Below, piece by piece: positions 1-33,784 of a stretch of DNA of 64,000 nt. The notes under the pieces are model-generated. The model had not been told where the DNA came from and did not search any database. It worked only from the letters and a program-made list of their open reading frames with translations. Position 1 is the first letter of the stretch; every line of letters starts with the position of its first letter. The DNA is from Camelus ferus (Eukaryota), in the NCBI RefSeq assembly GCF_009834535.1, contig NC_045717.1:20646001-20710000 (forward strand). The letters are read 5' to 3'. A program made the translations under genes and the position numbers.

Positions 1-7289
<7,289 letters not shown>

Positions 7290-7804
7290 CTTAGAAGGTG
7301 CAGCAGAGGCAGCAGCAGCACAGGCAACCCTGGCTTTTCGCGCGGAAACCGATGGGGAGGGGCGGCGAGCGGAGGCGGCGCGTACCATCCAGGCCCGGGC
7401 GTGGGGGAAGGCGGGACGTACCACACGGAGAGAGGCCGTACCATGTGTGGGCAGACGCAGTGGAGCCGGCTGTGCGCAGGGGTTGCGCATGCGCGAGGCA
7501 GACGCGCACCCCCGCGCTGAGCAGTGGGCTTGTCCAAGCGCCTCTGCTGGGAGCCTTGCCTGAGACATTCATTCATTCATTCTTTCCCCGCAGGCTAGGA
7601 GTAAAATCCGGAGCATCTCCAGGTGGTTCTAGCGTGAGGGCTCTAGAGTTCAAGTCCTCAATTCCAATCCCACCTCCACCTATTTGCTAACCCTGGGCAG
7701 GTCATTTGGAATCAGTCTGTTTCCTCATTTGTGAAAAGGAGCTCATAGGAGACCTGGGCCACTTCCACAGCCTGTGTGTTGAAAGAAGCACCGGAACTTC
7801 GGCA

Positions 7805-13841: not shown

Positions 13842-14927
13842 ACTTACATTTATATATATAAAATCTTGGGAATTAAACAAATGGATAAATTCCTGGACAT
13901 AAAGAATGTTACTTAGGAGCTGAAAGCAGAAGGAGGAATTTTTCTGCATGTCTTTTTGCCCTTTTGGAATGCTGGACTATATGGCTGTATTATTTATGTC
14001 AAACAAAAACTGGCAGAGCATTGGTGAAAGGATAGTCTTGTCAGTCAATGGTGCTGGACCCACTGGATAACCCTATGGAAGAAAGGGAACCTTGATCCCT
14101 ACCTCATACCATATACAAAACTTCAGCCATCTCCCAGATCTAAATGGAAAAGCAGAGTCAAGAAAGCTCTTAAAATAAGACATAGAACATCACTGTGACT
14201 TTGGAGTAGGCAAATGTTTCTTTAACGGGACACAAAGCATGTTAATCATAAAGAAAAATATGTTACGCTGTATTAAAATGAATTTGTTCATCAAAAGATA
14301 TCACCAAAAAGACAAGCCATAGACATGTCCACCAACCAAGGACTTGTATCTATGACATACATAGAATTAAGTAAAAAAAAAAAAAGACAGGCAACCTCTT
14401 TTTTGTTAAGTAGACAAAAGAGCTGAACAGGCACTTCACAAAAGGAGGATATCCAAATGACCAAGACTGGAATGGGAAGCTACTTAACTTCATTAGTCAT
14501 CAGGGAAATGCAAAATGAAACCTCAATATGATATCAGCTCCCACAGACACCCATCAACGCTAGGATGGCTGAAATGAAACAAGAAAAGCTTATGGGTGCT
14601 AGCAAGACCAGAACTCTCCTGTGTTGCTGGGAGAGCCTAAAATGGCCCAGCCACTTTGGAAAATGATTTGGCAATATCTGCTAGGGCTAACCATACTCCT
14701 GCCCTCCGGCCCAGTAATTCCACTCCTGGATGAATGCATTGGTCCAGGGTACTTCTCCCCACTTCTCTCACCCACTTCAAGCTTGGGCCTCCTTCCTTCC
14801 AAGACACGTATGTCCTGCCTCGCCTCTCTCAGCCCACCCAAGCCCTCTTTAGCCCACCTGGGTCCTGTGACCACCACCCATTCACATCCACCAGGCCCCA
14901 GTGGTCAGACCTCAGGGAATCACTCAC

Positions 14928-15090
14928 CTCCTGGTGCAGGAAGTGAAAACACACAGTGTCTGCTCCTGAGCTGCAAAGAAAATCATCATCACCACACTGA
15001 GCAGGGATGAGAACTGAGCTGGCCCTGGCCATTAAATCAGAAGGACTTCACGTGAAGCGCCTCCTTCCCGGAAATGACCCCTAATTAACC
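14928..15090 (-). other. DNMT1: Candidate oocyte-specific alternative first exon (exon 1o) of DNMT1
   Basis: Consensus donor GAG|GTGAGT at 14928. The 5' end GGTTAATTAGGGGTCATT (15090-15073) matches 15/18 the mouse Dnmt1o-specific primer as I recall it (GGTTGATTGAGGGTCATT). About 163 nt, no recognisable repeat, correct strand, several kb upstream of exon 1s as in mouse. The 5' boundary is approximate. Confidence 0.7.
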
Positions 15091-15369
15091 ACAACTGCCA
15101 CAACTAATTGAAAGTTTGAACCCTTTAACCAAAGGCAATCACCAAGGTATTACAACTACCTGGCAAAGAAAGACTCCAATCAGGGCACTGGGGATACCTC
15201 TAAAAGTTTCCCCACTCTCCCAGCTGAACCAGCCGACAAGGTGGAAGGAACCAGAAGGGCACACACCCTTCCTCAACCTGGGCACTAGGGACTCTTGGAG
15301 CCTTTGCCATGAGAGACTGACCCTCGTATTGCAGGCTGATTAGCAACTTCCCTGACCTCTACCCGCTAG

Positions 15370-15946: not shown

Positions 15947-16760
15947 TAAAGTGGACATCATGATGATGTGATATAGGTAAGCACTGTGAAGTGATTACCA
16001 CAATCAAGCTAATTAACACAACCATCACCTCGCTTAGTTACCATTTTTTGTGTGTAGTTAGAACTGTCTTAGCAAACTCTGGCTATACTGTACAATATTA
16101 TTAACTACAATCACCATGCTGTATATTAGATCCTTGGAATTTATTAATCTCATAATTGAAAGTCTGAACCCTTTAGCCAAAATCTCCTCGTTTCCCTCTT
16201 CCCCCAGTCCCAGGCAACCACCCTTCTATTCTCTGCTTCCGTGAGTTCAACTTTTTNNNNNNNNNNNNNNNNNNNNNNNNNNNNNNNNNNNNNNNNNNNN
16301 NNNNNNNNNNNNNNNNNNNNNNNNNNNNNNNNNNNNNNNNNNNNNNNNNNNNNNNNNNNNNNNNNNNNNNNNNNNNNNNNNNNNNNNNNNNNNNNNNTGT
16401 GTATATGTGTACATGTGCATCATGTTTTCTTTATTCATTCTTCCATTGATGGACACTTAGGTTGTTTCCATATCTTGACTACTGCGAATAATGCTGCAAT
16501 AAACATGAAAGTGCTGATACCTTGTCAAGATACTCGTTGCAGTTCCTTTGGATATGGACCTAGAAGTGGGGTTTCTGGATCATATGATAGTTTTATTTTT
16601 AATCTTGAGGAACCTCCGTACTGTTTTCCATAATGGAAACTTCCTAACATTGTATTATATATTTACTTTTATGATCTGTCTCCCTGACTAGAATGTAAGA
16701 TCTCTGAAGATAGAACAGAATGTTCAATATGTATTTTGAGAGGTTGGAATTCTTTTTTAA

Positions 16761-16935: not shown

Positions 16936-19639
16936 TTGGAATTCTTTTTTAATAAACTTATTGAAGTAAAATTGATATGCCACAAAATTTTCATCCATGT
17001 TAAGCATAAAAATCAATGTTTTTTAGAAAATTTGCCAAGTTGTGCAACTATCATCACAATCCAGTTTTAGAAGATTTCCATCACTCCAATAAGAATCCTC
17101 ATACCTGTTTACATTTAATCCCATTCCTGCCTCCAACCCCAGGCAACCACGACTCTATTTTCTGTCTCTGTAGGTTTGCCTCTTATGGACATGACATGTA
17201 ATGGACCATGCAATTTGTGATATTTTGCATCTGACTTCTTTCACCTAGCATATTTGTTTTGAGTTTCATCATGTTATTATGTGTATCAGTATTTTGTTCT
17301 TTTTAACTGCTGCGCTATATTCCACTGTATGGAAGAACCATATTTTGCTTAGCCATTCATCAGCTGATGGACATTTGAATTGTTTGCACTTTGGGACTAT
17401 TGTGAAAAATGCCGTTATGAGCATTCACACACACGTCTCTGTGTGGACATAGGTGCTCATTTCTCTTGGGTAGATACCTGGAGTCAAATTTCTGGGTCAC
17501 ATAGTAAGTTTATGCTTGCTTTTCTAAGAAACTGCCAAACTGTTTCCCAAAGTGTCAGTACCATTGTGTATTCAAGGTTGGGATTATTAACATACCATTT
17601 TACAGATGATGAAACATGCTGAGAACAGTCAGGTGGTTTGCCAAAAGTCTACTTGTGTTGTCAGGTGTTGGGTTTGAGATTCAAATCTGATTTTTTGTTT
17701 TAGAGTATGTGCTATTAAAACTTACACCACAGATGCCACTGGCAATGAGTCACACCCACACAACTTCATTTCTCTTTTGTGACAGATTTAACTATTCCTG
17801 GATGAGACATTTAGGTGGATGTCGGATCCCTGAATTTGGGGCAGTACATTTGCTTTGTAGACAAATGAGAAAAATGGCCAGAATGTGAGGATGGGGAGAT
17901 AGATTAGAAACCCTTTGAAGATGGCTAATGAAATGATAGGTCCAGGCAACAGTCCATGGATGATCAAACCATTAGGGGACAGTTGGATAGGGAACTGACA
18001 AAGGCAGGACCCAGCTGATGGCATGTGAACCCCTTGATCCGTCTTAGTCATCAGTAAAAGAGAGATAGCCAGACATCATGTCCTCCTGGTGAAAGTTTCC
18101 AGCACCACCTACAAAGAATTGAAGCCCAAAATATCAATCTGGAATTTGGGGACAAAGGAACATGTTAAATGACATAGAGGGATGCCATCAGCCAATTTTA
18201 AACTATGGGAAACCCTGGAGGGCAAATAACCTGGCTCCTTAAACAAATGAATTAAATAAAAAGAAAGGAAAGGAAAGGAAAGGAAATAGGGAGAAGGAAA
18301 TCTTGTTAAACAAGGTTGAATAGGTTTATCCTGGTTAACCAATGAATTTAACCAGGTTAAACAAACTTGTTAAATAGTACTTCAGAGATTCATTAACAAA
18401 ATGCCATATGAAGACCTCATTTGGATTCTGACTCAAGCAAGTAACACATCGGAAAAGAAAACTGACACCTGAAACTAACAAAACATTGTAAATCAACGAT
18501 ACTTCAATTAAAAAAAAAGAAAGCCGAGACGGGGAAATTTTAACAGATTGATACTTTTGATAAGTATGATCATTGTGGTTAAGTTAAAAAAAAGTGTTGC
18601 TTTCTTTTTAAGATGAAAAGTGGAGTATTTACAAATGAAACAGTGTGATATCCCCTGATTTTCCTAAAAATACCCAGTGAGTAATAGTTGATTCAGACAA
18701 ATGGATGCTAAATGAGTAAAAGTTTGATGAGGAACAGAATACCCACAGAGTCTCAAAGTACCTCCCCACAAGATAGTTAATTTCAAAGGAGGAAATAGTT
18801 ACTTTCAAGTGGAGAAACTTGGCAGATACCTCCAAGTGATCAAAGACAACATTGCTAGTAATGGAACTAATTGAGAAAGACACACACTTCTGTCATTATT
18901 TCTGCCAAAGATGCATAACCTGAATCTTAATTGGGAGGAAACATCAGGCAAACCCACGTTGAAGGACATCCTACCAAATTACTGACCTACATTTTTCCAA
19001 AACGTCAAAGTCCCAGAAGACAAAGAAAGGTTCAGAAATTGTTCCGATTGAAGGAAACTAAAAAGAAAACTGAATGCAACAAGTGAGCTGGGATTTTCTG
19101 CTATAAAGGTGGGTAATAAGACAATTGGTGAAGGCTGATTAAGGTTTGTAGATTTGCTGATTTTGATAACTTTACTGAGGGGATATAAGAGAATGCCTTG
19201 TCCTTGGGAAATACAAGGAGTATTCAGGTAGATGTATATATGAATAGATAGATAGGTAGTCAGATAGAAAGGCAGACAGGAGCCTGGACTGCTAGTAAGT
19301 GGGCATCCATCCTTCTTACCCAGGACAAATTTCCCCTGAAATCCTTACGTATAAGAAAGAACTCAATATCTCTAAGTTACTAATATCGCATTTTGTCATC
19401 AGCAGCTGAGCCTGATCTTGATATCATTATTAAAAGAAATATTCAAAAATCATGAAATGATATGTGGAAGCTATAATGTCATTCACAATCACAGTAATGG
19501 TAAGACATGAATTTTTGCTGAAATGGTGGTAAAATGCTGAGAGAGTTCAGCTGCCCAGAGGCTGCAGAAACCAGGTATATGGAATCTAGAATTGTGCTGC
19601 CAGTACTGTAGCTAATAGCCACAAGCGGCTATTCACATC

Positions 19640-23702: not shown

Positions 23703-24761
23703 TCAGACCACCGTGTTGCCCTCCAGAGATGTGGGCGATGTGGGCATGTGCGTGCCCCTCTCCAGTGAGCTGGAGCTGCGGAGGGGCAGGAGGCGGTGGC
23801 CCGGGGTCCCGTCCCGCCGTCCCTGCACCCCTGCCGCCCGGTGCCAGCACTGCAGCGGCCGTAACACCTCCCGCCGCAGGTCCCGGCTGCGCCACGTGTA
23901 GATGACAGGGTTGAGCAGCGAGTTGAGGGTGGCAAAGGCAAAGAAGTAGTGGGCCTTGTAGAGGATAGGGCAGGCCCGGACAGGACAGGCATAGTCCAGG
24001 AGGAGGATGCTAAAGGCGGGCAGCCAGCAGACAATGAAGACACCTAGCACGAAGGTGACTGTCTTGAGCAGGGCCAGCGTCTGCGGGCCAGCCACATCAG
24101 CCTGGCTGGAGCGCACCACGCAGTAGATGCGGATGTACAGAGCTACAATGGCCAGTAAGATGACAGAGAAGATGCTTACCACGCAGAGCACGTAGGGCTT
24201 GGCGTAGAGTGGCAGAACGGTGGAGCAAGCTTCCAGGTGGCCCAGGCAATTCCAGCCCAGGATGGGCAGCCCGCCGAGAACCAGCGAGATGAGCCACGAG
24301 GCCGCGATGAGCAGCAGCATGCGGCAGCTCTTGTCGCTGCCGTAGGGCTTGACCTTGGCAATGGCCACGTGCCGCTCAATGGCTATGGCCAGGAGGCTGA
24401 AGACAGAGGCAGAGAGCGTGATGAAGGCCGAGCCCTCACGGGCAAACCACTGCACAGGTGTCAGCCCGAACGTGAAACGGCCAGAGAGCAAGGTATTGGC
24501 GATGAAGGCCGCACCCGCCAGCAGGTCTGAGGCAGCCAGGTTGCCCAGGAACAGGTACATGGCCGAGTGGAACTTGCTGTTGCGCGCGACTGCGATGAGT
24601 ACCAGCAGGTTCTCCACCACGATGGCGCAGCAGAGGATGATGATGAGGGCTGAGGCCACCTGGCGGGAGGGCGTCTCCCGCGTGTCCAGCGTCTCCTTGG
24701 TGTGATTATAGTGTTCCCGAACCTTGCTGGGGCTTAGGTACTCTGAGTACAGGTTGCCCAT
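23703..24761 (-). CDS. S1PR2: Sphingosine-1-phosphate receptor 2 (7TM GPCR, 352 aa, single coding exon)
   Basis: Intact ORF MGNLYSEYL...EGNTVV with R108/E109 ligand residues, ERH motif, CWLP, NPVIY and C-terminal TVV. Strong Kozak ACCATGG. Exon 2 acceptor ctgcag|C at 24803. Confidence 0.99.
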   Translation of the reverse strand: MGNLYSEYLSPSKVREHYNHTKETLDTRETPSRQVASALIIILCCAIVVENLLVLIAVARNSKFHSAMYLFLGNLAASDLLAGAAFIANTLLSGRFTFGLTPVQWFAREGSAFITLSASVFSLLAIAIERHVAIAKVKPYGSDKSCRMLLLIAASWLISLVLGGLPILGWNCLGHLEACSTVLPLYAKPYVLCVVSIFSVILLAIVALYIRIYCVVRSSQADVAGPQTLALLKTVTFVLGVFIVCWLPAFSILLLDYACPVRACPILYKAHYFFAFATLNSLLNPVIYTWRSRDLRREVLRPLQCWHRAAGVQGRRDGTPGHRLLPLRSSSSLERGTHMPTSPTSLEGNTVV

Positions 24762-31162: not shown

Positions 31163-33784
31163 AGAAACTGATTTCCTGGGAGAGGAACTGAAAGACAGGG
31201 CACAGGTCAGAGGAAGGAGGTTGCTTTCCCTCTTTTGTAATTTTGACTTTTACAACAAGTACATACATGCCCTATTTCAACAATAAACTGATTTAAAATT
31301 TTAGACTGCTGATACCCAGACAGTGCAATAAAAATGAGGGAGAAAGTAGGTGCACTCTTCTATGTTTATACTATACTTCAGTAGAGTATTGAAAAGCNNN
31401 NNNNNNNNNNNNNNNNNNNNNNNNNNNNNNNNNNNNNNNNNNNNNNNNNNNNNNNNNNNNNNNNNNNNNNNNNNNNNNNNNNNNNNNNNNNNNNNNNNNN
31501 NNNNNNNNNNNNNNNNNNNNNNNNNNNNNNNNNNNNNNNNNNNNNNNNNNNNNNNNNNNNNNNNNNNNNNNNNNNNNNNNNNNNNNNNNNNNNNNNNNNN
31601 NNNNNNNNNNNNNNNNNTGGATGAAACTTGAGGGCCTTGTGGCAAGTGAAATGAGCCAGACAGAGAAAAGACAAATACCACATGGTATCACTTATATGTG
31701 GAATCTTAAAAAAAAATCAAACTCATAGAAACACACAGTAGGAAAAATGGTTGCCAGAGGCAGGGAGGTGGGGTAAGTAGGAAGAGATTAGTAAAAGGGT
31801 GCAAACTTTCCGTTATATGATGAATAAGGTCTGAAGATCTAATATACAGCAGGGTGACTGTAGTTGGTAATAGTGTATCAGACCATTGAAATTTACTGAA
31901 AGAGTAGACCTGAAATGGTCTCACATCCACACACACACACAAAAAGATAAATATGATAAATATGTGAGGTGATGGATGTGCTAATTAGCTAGCTGGAGAG
32001 AATCCTTTCACAATGTATACGTACATCCAATCACCGTGATGTACACTTTAACTGTCTTACAATTTTACATGTCAATGATACCTCAAAAAAGCTGAAATTA
32101 AAAAAAAAATTACAGATGCTTGAATCCCAGACAATGCAACCAATAAAAGAAAAAGGTGGGGGGAAGGGTTCAGCACACTCTTCTGTATATATATTTTACT
32201 CCATAAAGTGTTGAAAAGCAAAACTTCAAAAAAGGAAACTAAAGTCAATCCATACATGCCTATTAAATAGGAAAAATGGAGTCTTGAGGTAAAACTGTCT
32301 TCAATTTATTAAGGTGAAAAAAAGCACAAGATAGACCAGTTTGCACTGCTTGCTTGCCTGTATTTCTGGATTTATTTATAAGGGCATATAAATACACACA
32401 CATTTGCCTGCGGACTCACAGGCCATCTCCCAGAGAAGGCACATGACATCGTCACAGCGGTTACCCCCAGGGAGGGGACCTGAGTTAGGGGGAACAGGTG
32501 ACAGGGGGCCAGACACTTTATGGTGTACCCTTGGGGGGACGGTTTGAAATTTTTAGCTCATATTACCAATTCAAAAATTTTACAAAGATGTGAAAAATTA
32601 AATAAAAAGTAACAAATCACTGGACTTCTAATTGTAAGCTTGTTCCTGTAATCATAGTAATGAATAGTGCCAATAATATAAATAAACAATAACACTGATT
32701 ACATATCTACGTTATTATTCAACATATCGTCATTAAATAAATTTATATTAAGAGTAAACATATTTAAGTTTTTCATAAAGAAGTGAATATTAAGAATCAA
32801 TATATTAATGTTACATATATATGTATGCAGCATATATATTCATATAATGCTCTGTTCTGGTGATACCTCGTTGGTTTCTGCCATCCAAAACTGACAGTCT
32901 GATGAAGGAGACAGAAGAAACGAGACAGTTTGAACTCAGGGTAGCAGACCGTTGATGGGAAGATAAGAAAGCCGGAGTGACTTCATTCCTTTTCCTGAAT
33001 GAGATTTCAGTGCCCACTCAGTTCTGGGCCAGATCTCGGGGTCCACTTGGACTTCAGCAAAACCGCACCAAATCCTCTGCCCAAATGAAGTGTGGCCATA
33101 AAACCTTTAGAAACCAGGTGTTCAAACCACAGAAGACAAAGCCCTGAAAAAACTGGGTCCTCTCTTCACCGAGGAGCTGTCGGAGCGGAAATGTTAGCCC
33201 TCTGTGAGGACCTGAAAGATCTTGGGAGGAAGTGGCCCCCACAACTTGCGTTGCTGGCTCAGCAGTTTGCCATCTCCCCAGGGACGTGGGGGCGACGGTA
33301 ATATCAAGGCTGCAGACATATCCGGCTGTCTGTTAGGGGGGCCGTGGCTTCTAGACAAAGGTGATGTCCCTAGAGACACACAGACACCCACAAGTGACTT
33401 CCACCTCCTCCCCCACCACCTCCCGCTTCTGGGGCAACATGCGGTCTCTGCCGGCTCAGCTGAGGGAACAGGTTGGAGAACTGGGAAACACTGGTCTAGA
33501 CTCCTGGATGGTCTGGGAGGTCAAGGCAAAAGCTAAGCCCCACCCTAGGGTTCAGTTGGGGTCCCTGAGTGAGAGAACAGTGGAAGAGGAAGGAAACGGG
33601 GCCCTTTTCTTGGGGAGCTCCCAAGCAAGAGAAAGGAAGAAAAGGAAGAGGCTTGGGCCAGCCTCCACTAATTACAGGGCCACCGACAGTAATGGCTAAT
33701 GCTCACAGACACAGACAGTGTTGGGTGTGGCTCTATGAATCCTCACAACCCTAGGAGGTGGGTATTATTATTACCATCATTCCA

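Follow-up and report, generated by a model that had tools for sequence, protein, structure and literature searches.

Whether the oocyte-specific first exon of DNMT1 adds amino acids to the protein, or serves as a leader, is the question raised by a stretch of 64,000 nucleotides from Camelus ferus (contig NC_045717.1, positions 20,646,001 to 20,710,000; the window in what follows). In textbooks, mouse DNMT1o stands as the maternal-effect enzyme by which cleavage embryos keep their imprints, and its stability and cytoplasmic storage have been attributed to its missing N-terminus. This protein of about 170 kD (the somatic one has 190 kD) is obtained from an alternative promoter with a downstream start, and is made without 118 residues (PMC2164986, PMC6117921). 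The first-pass annotation of the window placed a putative oocyte exon of DNMT1 on the minus strand, and proposed that an in-frame ATG ATG inside it gives rise to a near-full-length oocyte DNMT1 with a new N-terminus.

Anatomy of the exon and its reading frames

The exon and the DNMT1 exons to which it can be related are located as follows:

14928..15090, minus strand: putative DNMT1 exon 1o, with an approximate 5' end set by alignment to what we take to be the start of the mouse gene annotation
14928..14989, minus strand: piece from the ATG ATG to the donor, 62 nt open, phase 2
14922..14927, minus strand: splice donor GTGAGT, its AG/GT kept in every species aligned
7210..7289, minus strand: coding part of somatic exon 1 (exon 1s), ATG at 7289, 80 nt, phase 2
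932..968, minus strand: DNMT1 exon 2, inside which both non-DNMT1 frames stop
304..411, minus strand: DNMT1 exon 3 (ECVKEKL...EELSE), matching DNMT1 N-terminal fragments

Two minus-strand ATGs (14989-14987 and 14986-14984) run 62 and 59 nt without a stop to the donor, both in phase 2. The letters of this piece, which start GTGGTG ATG ATG ATT TTC TTT GCA and end ACC AGG AG/GTGAGT, agree with the earlier statement that the ATG ATG opens 62 nt up to 14928. This position is the final exon base, and the donor context CAGGAG/GTGAGT is the consensus. The phase was said to be that of somatic exon 1 (80 nt), and exon 1s, from 7289 to 7210 in a CpG island at about 6500-7500, is indeed 80 nt long and of phase 2. 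The acceptor of exon 2 is good (...ttcttcccccag/GCTCAAAG), and the predicted splice from 14928 to 968 gives a 33-aa junction reading that begins (M)MIFFAAQ; the joined reading bears out the calculation of a product 6 aa shorter than somatic DNMT1. The purines reported at position -3 of both ATGs are G for 14989 and A for 14986, with A at +4 in the two cases.

When a representative protein library was searched with exon 3, the matches were short DNMT1 fragments only. Runs of N occupy 42-173, 16257-16397 and 31398-31617, the first of them covering the start of DNMT1 exon 4. Upstream of the somatic ATG, its frame is open for 93 codons (7290-7568, minus strand) and holds more in-frame ATGs; two database fragments, P0232 and P0223, are DNMT1 predictions of other species with such an N-terminal extension. 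If exon 1o were spliced into this 5'UTR of exon 1s, the 93 codons would be open to it, and there are only two fitting acceptors, both poor.

Identity of the exon

Two further features of the minus strand situate the exon with respect to its neighbour and its promoter:

23703..24761, minus strand: S1PR2 coding exon, the upstream neighbour and the anchor for orthologous loci
15091..15230, minus strand: promoter-like conserved blocks CTTTGCCAGGTAGTTGTAATA..TTGGTGATTGCCTTTGG, broken by a 26-nt insertion at about 15128-15103

The stretch from 14928 to about 15090 lies on the DNMT1 strand, with 8.7 kb separating it from the S1PR2 stop on its upstream side and 7.7 kb from exon 1s on its downstream side. 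The human exon 1o would lie some 6 kb upstream of 1s, when its coordinates (PMC6117921) are set against what we take to be the position of human exon 1s. For the comparison with other mammals, S1PR2 orthologues were used as anchors and the 10 kb downstream of S1PR2 was taken. The resulting alignment comprises 12 other genomes of 10 species, 13 with C. ferus: Bos, Bubalus, Capricornis, three deer genomes, beluga, narwhal, Hipposideros, zebra, squirrel and mouse, Bos being represented by two assemblies and Bubalus by two species among the loci where the exon stretch aligns. All aligned counterparts are found 8-10 kb from S1PR2, as in C. ferus, the mouse one aligning more weakly, and the AG/GT donor is kept in 12 of the 12 genomes, mouse included. 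The S1PR2 coding exon itself shows 91-92% nucleotide identity to those of warthog, hippo and beluga, and lower identity to bovids, horse, dog, squirrel and mouse, a pattern in keeping with a cetartiodactyl that branched off early. No match to exon 1o appeared within 10 kb of S1PR2 in warthog, hippo and dog, a result uninformative on conservation.

Mouse exon 1o, of about 150-165 nt, is also situated between S1pr2 and exon 1s, with its donor at the same alignment column and with conserved promoter blocks. The best-conserved part is the block upstream of the exon, 70% identical to mouse as compared with 54-57% for the exon body, as would be anticipated if a promoter preceded a first exon that is non-coding. 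The mouse stretch is assigned to exon 1o by a gene boundary that we presume to be at about 20,871,184 of GRCm39 chr9, corresponding to position 18643 of the mouse locus (L007) and aligning to about 15090 of the window.

Some short elements of this region have to be mentioned. The 26-nt insertion TTAAAGGGTTCAAACTTTCAATTAGT (15103-15128, minus strand), just upstream of the putative exon start, is present only in C. ferus among the species aligned, and could move the start site or supply a TATA-like TTAAAG. At the putative start, TAATTA (15082-15087, minus strand) resembles a NOBOX binding element and is a candidate for one. A palindromic E-box, CACGTG (15049-15054, minus strand), is found in the exon, where bat, whales, squirrel and mouse keep a CANNTG at the corresponding site. 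Dnmt1o is reportedly reduced in Nobox-null ovaries. Both motifs would fit an oocyte promoter.

Position, orthology alignments and the two buffalo gene models described below all back the original assignment to an oocyte exon of DNMT1. Judged from sequence comparison, the stretch can with high confidence be considered the counterpart of the oocyte-specific first exon 1o, with its promoter just upstream.

Protein libraries gave a few additional data. The N-terminus of a muntjac protein, P0217 (MFAAGSRIPTHSE...), was considered as an exon 1o product and rejected, having no match in the loci fetched. A search with the 69-aa peptide of exons 1o, 2 and 3 returned 22 fragments, none with an exon-1o N-terminus; only proteins of 38-120 aa were eligible, so that this result is uninformative. 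Three fragments of predicted cetacean proteins, P0225, P0226 and P0249 (blue whale, vaquita and narwhal), carry diverged DNMT1 exons 2-3 (KEKWNLLPEFL or KEEWNLLPEFL) behind unrelated N-termini; probably the 5' end of DNMT1 was partially duplicated or retrocopied.

Gene models and transcripts in ruminants and pig

The NCBI DNMT1 gene ranges of Bubalus kerabau (GCA_029407905.2) and B. bubalis (GCA_019923935.1) begin at the ATG homologous to 14986:

L004:19513 and L005:19508: starts of the two buffalo DNMT1 ranges, recorded through 21059 in each locus

A predicted isoform type that starts in exon 1o is, in this way, already in public annotation, as an automated buffalo prediction. These computational models resemble the C. 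ferus exon in having the same donor and phase, and differ from it in that the site of ATG 14989 reads AGG. The longest buffalo DNMT1 products have 1657 and 1655 aa, more than a simple exchange of 1s for 1o would give; bovine DNMT1, with 1611 aa, is about 46 aa below the longest of them. It is probable that the buffalo model from exon 1o includes further coding sequence before exon 2 is reached, and an N-terminal extension of the somatic-ATG frame may explain the excess length.

RNA-seq of cow and pig oocytes has revealed reads that join an upstream exon, absent from the annotation, to internal exons of DNMT1 (Ivanova et al. 2020, PMC7216732). The upstream promoter is not a CpG island in these two species, the spliced reads are present in oocytes and cleavage embryos, and cow oocytes also hold DNMT1 transcripts from the somatic promoter (PMC7216732). 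The text of that study carries no coordinates, so that the equation of this upstream exon with exon 1o is our own; coding potential is not taken up in it. Around the Bos equivalent, a window of -1500/+500 contains 17 CpG, the number published for the cow DNMT1o promoter (PMC7216732), which is a weak check because the local median is also 17.

The upstream ATG

The first-pass annotation overlooked a third ATG, the one with the strongest context of the three:

15030..15032, minus strand: upstream ATG (TTAATGG), with A at -3 and G at +4, phase 0

From 15032 no stop is met in the 105 nt before the donor and, once spliced, the frame amounts to 42 codons that overlap the ATGATG and end at TAG 947-945 in exon 2. 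With the start site at about 15090 (the mouse-aligned position, for which a presumed coordinate was used), this ATG would stand 58 nt from the cap and be the first AUG. A near-full-length product then needs leaky scanning or a start site further downstream; if transcription started between 15032 and 14989, the ATGATG would become the first AUG.

The upstream ATG occurs in 10 of the 13 genomes, Monodon being counted in the 13, and has been lost in whales and squirrel; mouse has it at the same aligned site. Bovids carry it with the same 42-codon frame and a length of 105 nt identical to the camelid one, and in horse the frame stops in exon 2. The mouse frame ends within the exon after 14 codons, whereas that of C. 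ferus runs into exon 2. In deer (L018:19440-19612, L019:19423-19595, L020:19325-19500) a 1-nt deletion puts this first exon-1o ATG, in the same TTAATGG, into the DNMT1 frame, with MARAGSILIPAQCGEDDFLCSSGADVVCFHSCTRR-LKDL... as the predicted reading, and in Hipposideros (L016:17675-17880) a 2-nt insertion does likewise. For deer and Hipposideros, a scanning model predicts a full-length-like oocyte DNMT1.

Chance level and conservation of the in-frame ATG

When the 163-nt exon was shuffled 20,000 times with its dinucleotides preserved, 28.7% of the results held a phase-2 ATG open to the end; for random 163-nt pieces of the window the share was 25.6%. The in-frame ATG ATG is no more than the chance expectation of 26-29%.

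The alignment of exon 1o across species had been suggested as a check on the ATG and its frame. The state of the sites of ATG 14989 and ATG 14986, in that order, and the length from there to the donor are given below; exon 2 of C. ferus was used for every species when frame stops were predicted:

C. ferus: ATG and ATG; 62/59 nt, in frame
Bos, Bubalus, Capricornis: AGG and ATG; 59 nt, in frame
Three deer genomes: AGG and ATG; 58 nt through a 1-nt deletion, out of frame, stops in exon 2
Beluga, narwhal: AGG and ACG; 59 nt, no ATG
Hipposideros: TGG and ACG; 61 nt (+2 insertion), no ATG
Zebra: AGG and AAA; 60 nt (+1 insertion), no ATG
Squirrel: AGG and GAG; 57 nt, no ATG
Mouse: ACT and AAG; 56 nt, no ATG, TAA and TGA in the stretch

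ATG 14989 is found in C. ferus only, and ATG 14986 is common to C. ferus and ruminants only (13 genomes). An ATG is missing from 6 of the 13 and frame-shifted in the three deer, and indels have accumulated in bat, horse, squirrel and mouse, so that neither the ATG nor the frame is conserved outside the camelid and the bovids. Mouse exon 1o has no DNMT1-frame ATG and carries TAA and TGA in the stretch, unlike the C. ferus exon with its two in-frame ATGs. Within camelid and bovids exactly 59 nt and the phase are kept, which is compatible with use and also expected by chance over so short a piece.

Substitutions were then compared. Camelid-versus-Bos identity is 0.85 in the piece from the ATG to the donor, against 0.84-0.88 in the non-coding flanks. 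When the 105 nt between ATG 15032 and the donor are translated in the DNMT1 frame, 2-3 of the codon differences prove synonymous and 7-10 non-synonymous; a synonymous excess was sought in this frame and none was found, the pattern being like that of the other two frames.

Taken together, the loss of the ATG, the frame-breaking indels, the flank-level identity, the neutral substitutions and the chance-level occurrence suggest that exon 1o evolves as a non-coding leader, with no sign of selection on a peptide. The ATG ATG is best explained, as far as these alignments can tell, as an unconstrained and recently arisen feature. Taking into account that whales and bat have ACG where camelid and ruminants have ATG, ATG 14986 most likely derives from an ancestral ACG by a CpG-to-TpG change, and ATG 14989 most likely from a G-to-T change seen only in C. 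ferus. For ATG 14986, two independent hits would be as parsimonious as one gain followed by a reversal, and would be the likelier course given the mutability of CpG.

A possible near-full-length oocyte DNMT1

According to the strongest of the competing explanations, ATG 14989/14986 would be the main start of translation on the 1o mRNA, and the oocyte would store a near-full-length DNMT1 whose leader is hydrophobic and contains Cys and which has most of the DMAP1-binding domain. The ATG, the phase and the donor are as originally described, both ATGs have their purine at -3, the second ATG and its 59-nt spacing are kept in bovids, and the buffalo annotation calls a CDS from that ATG. In mouse there is also a knock-in allele in which exon 1o has received the coding sequence of the somatic N-terminus (PMC2266903).

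The domain itself can be traced in the spliced peptides. Pfam DMAP_binding, with a cut-off of 27 bits that both peptides exceed, is detected with 57 bits in the peptide of exons 1s, 2 and 3 (profile positions 3-80) and with 39 bits in that of exons 1o, 2 and 3 (profile positions 11-80). The proposal that the product keeps the DMAP1-binding domain holds to the extent of this 39-bit match, and fails for the first 8 or so positions, which are encoded by exon 1s and lost. Mice with the above-mentioned knock-in are said, on the account of Ding and Chaillet in 2002, to be viable and to accumulate less protein. None of the papers in the library searched takes up the presence of an ATG in exon 1o, whatever the species.

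Against translation from the ATGATG stand the earlier ATG, which has a stronger context and opens an overlapping out-of-frame reading, the absence of conservation of ATG and frame beyond camelid and bovids together with the deer frameshift, and the neutral pattern of substitutions and chance-level occurrence. We thus regard this reading as unlikely. The broader idea of a different, species-specific protein design fares no better, as ATG and frame are unconserved, the substitutions neutral and the upstream ATG stronger, and as the in-frame ATG is common to cattle, buffalo and serow; a new design would be allowed by the sequence without being favoured by it, and is weakly supported.

Proposed translation of the 1o mRNA

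Starting from the observed anatomy, orthology, lack of conservation and upstream ATG, and supposing a mouse-like start site and expression in the oocytes of C. ferus, a translational outcome can be proposed. If transcription starts at the mouse-aligned site, the first AUG of the 1o mRNA would be that at 15032, in its strong context, and most scanning ribosomes would translate the 42-codon upstream frame that ends in exon 2. DNMT1 could then be reached by two routes. Through the first, reinitiation at the exon-4 methionine would yield a short, mouse-type DNMT1o; the ending of both non-DNMT1 frames inside exon 2 leaves room for reinitiation at this methionine, which is the one used in mouse. Through the second, leaky scanning to ATG 14989/14986 would yield a near-full-length DNMT1. 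Reinitiation after an upstream frame of 42 codons is usually inefficient, and for this reason leaky scanning could matter more than assumed. A point against the proposal is the 26-nt insertion exclusive to C. ferus, which lies just upstream of the putative start and could shift the start site. As a whole, the explanation that joins a conserved exon 1o and promoter, evolution as a non-coding leader, a first AUG at 15032 and two routes to DNMT1 seems to us a reasonably probable one.

It could be argued that the 15032 frame is itself functional, either as a coding region for a regulatory peptide or as an upstream ORF that gates translation, the ATGATG being a by-product. The presence of its ATG in 10 of the 13 genomes, the strong context, the identical 105-nt length in camelid and bovids, and the two non-DNMT1 frames whose ends in exon 2 would permit downstream reinitiation are in line with such a role. 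Nevertheless, deer, bat and horse have an altered frame, whales and squirrel lack it, in mouse it has only 14 codons, and its own codons show 3-5 synonymous versus 8-10 non-synonymous differences, again with no synonymous excess, which makes a function of this kind improbable.

Equally improbable is the view that the exon survives as a relic, or for some regulatory purpose, and does not act as a first exon in C. ferus, with oocyte DNMT1 coming from the somatic promoter only: the use of both promoters in cow oocytes, an older study that judged bovine DNMT1o unlikely (PMC7216732) and the C. ferus-only 26-nt insertion in the core promoter region would agree with it, but the perfect GTGAGT donor, the promoter blocks conserved from mouse to C. 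ferus and the spliced reads from the upstream exon in the related cow and pig do not.

Meaning for oocyte DNMT1 in mammals

Whether a truncated oocyte form exists beyond mouse is unsettled among mammals, and the literature on cow is contradictory. A conceivable, though rather doubtful, reading is that exon 1o has entered and left the DNMT1 frame in the course of mammalian evolution, so that some lineages encode a near-full-length oocyte DNMT1. If this were true, deer and the horseshoe-type bat would do so by means of the first AUG, and camelids and bovids by means of the second, through leaky scanning or a downstream start. Such a flip between lineages could also account for the difficulty of demonstrating a short DNMT1o protein in ruminants despite the upstream oocyte transcript.

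In sum, exon 1o and its promoter have been conserved and its coding potential has not, and the protein made from the 1o mRNA may therefore differ by lineage. Given these differences in the frame of exon 1o, the nature of oocyte DNMT1 outside rodents becomes an empirical question.
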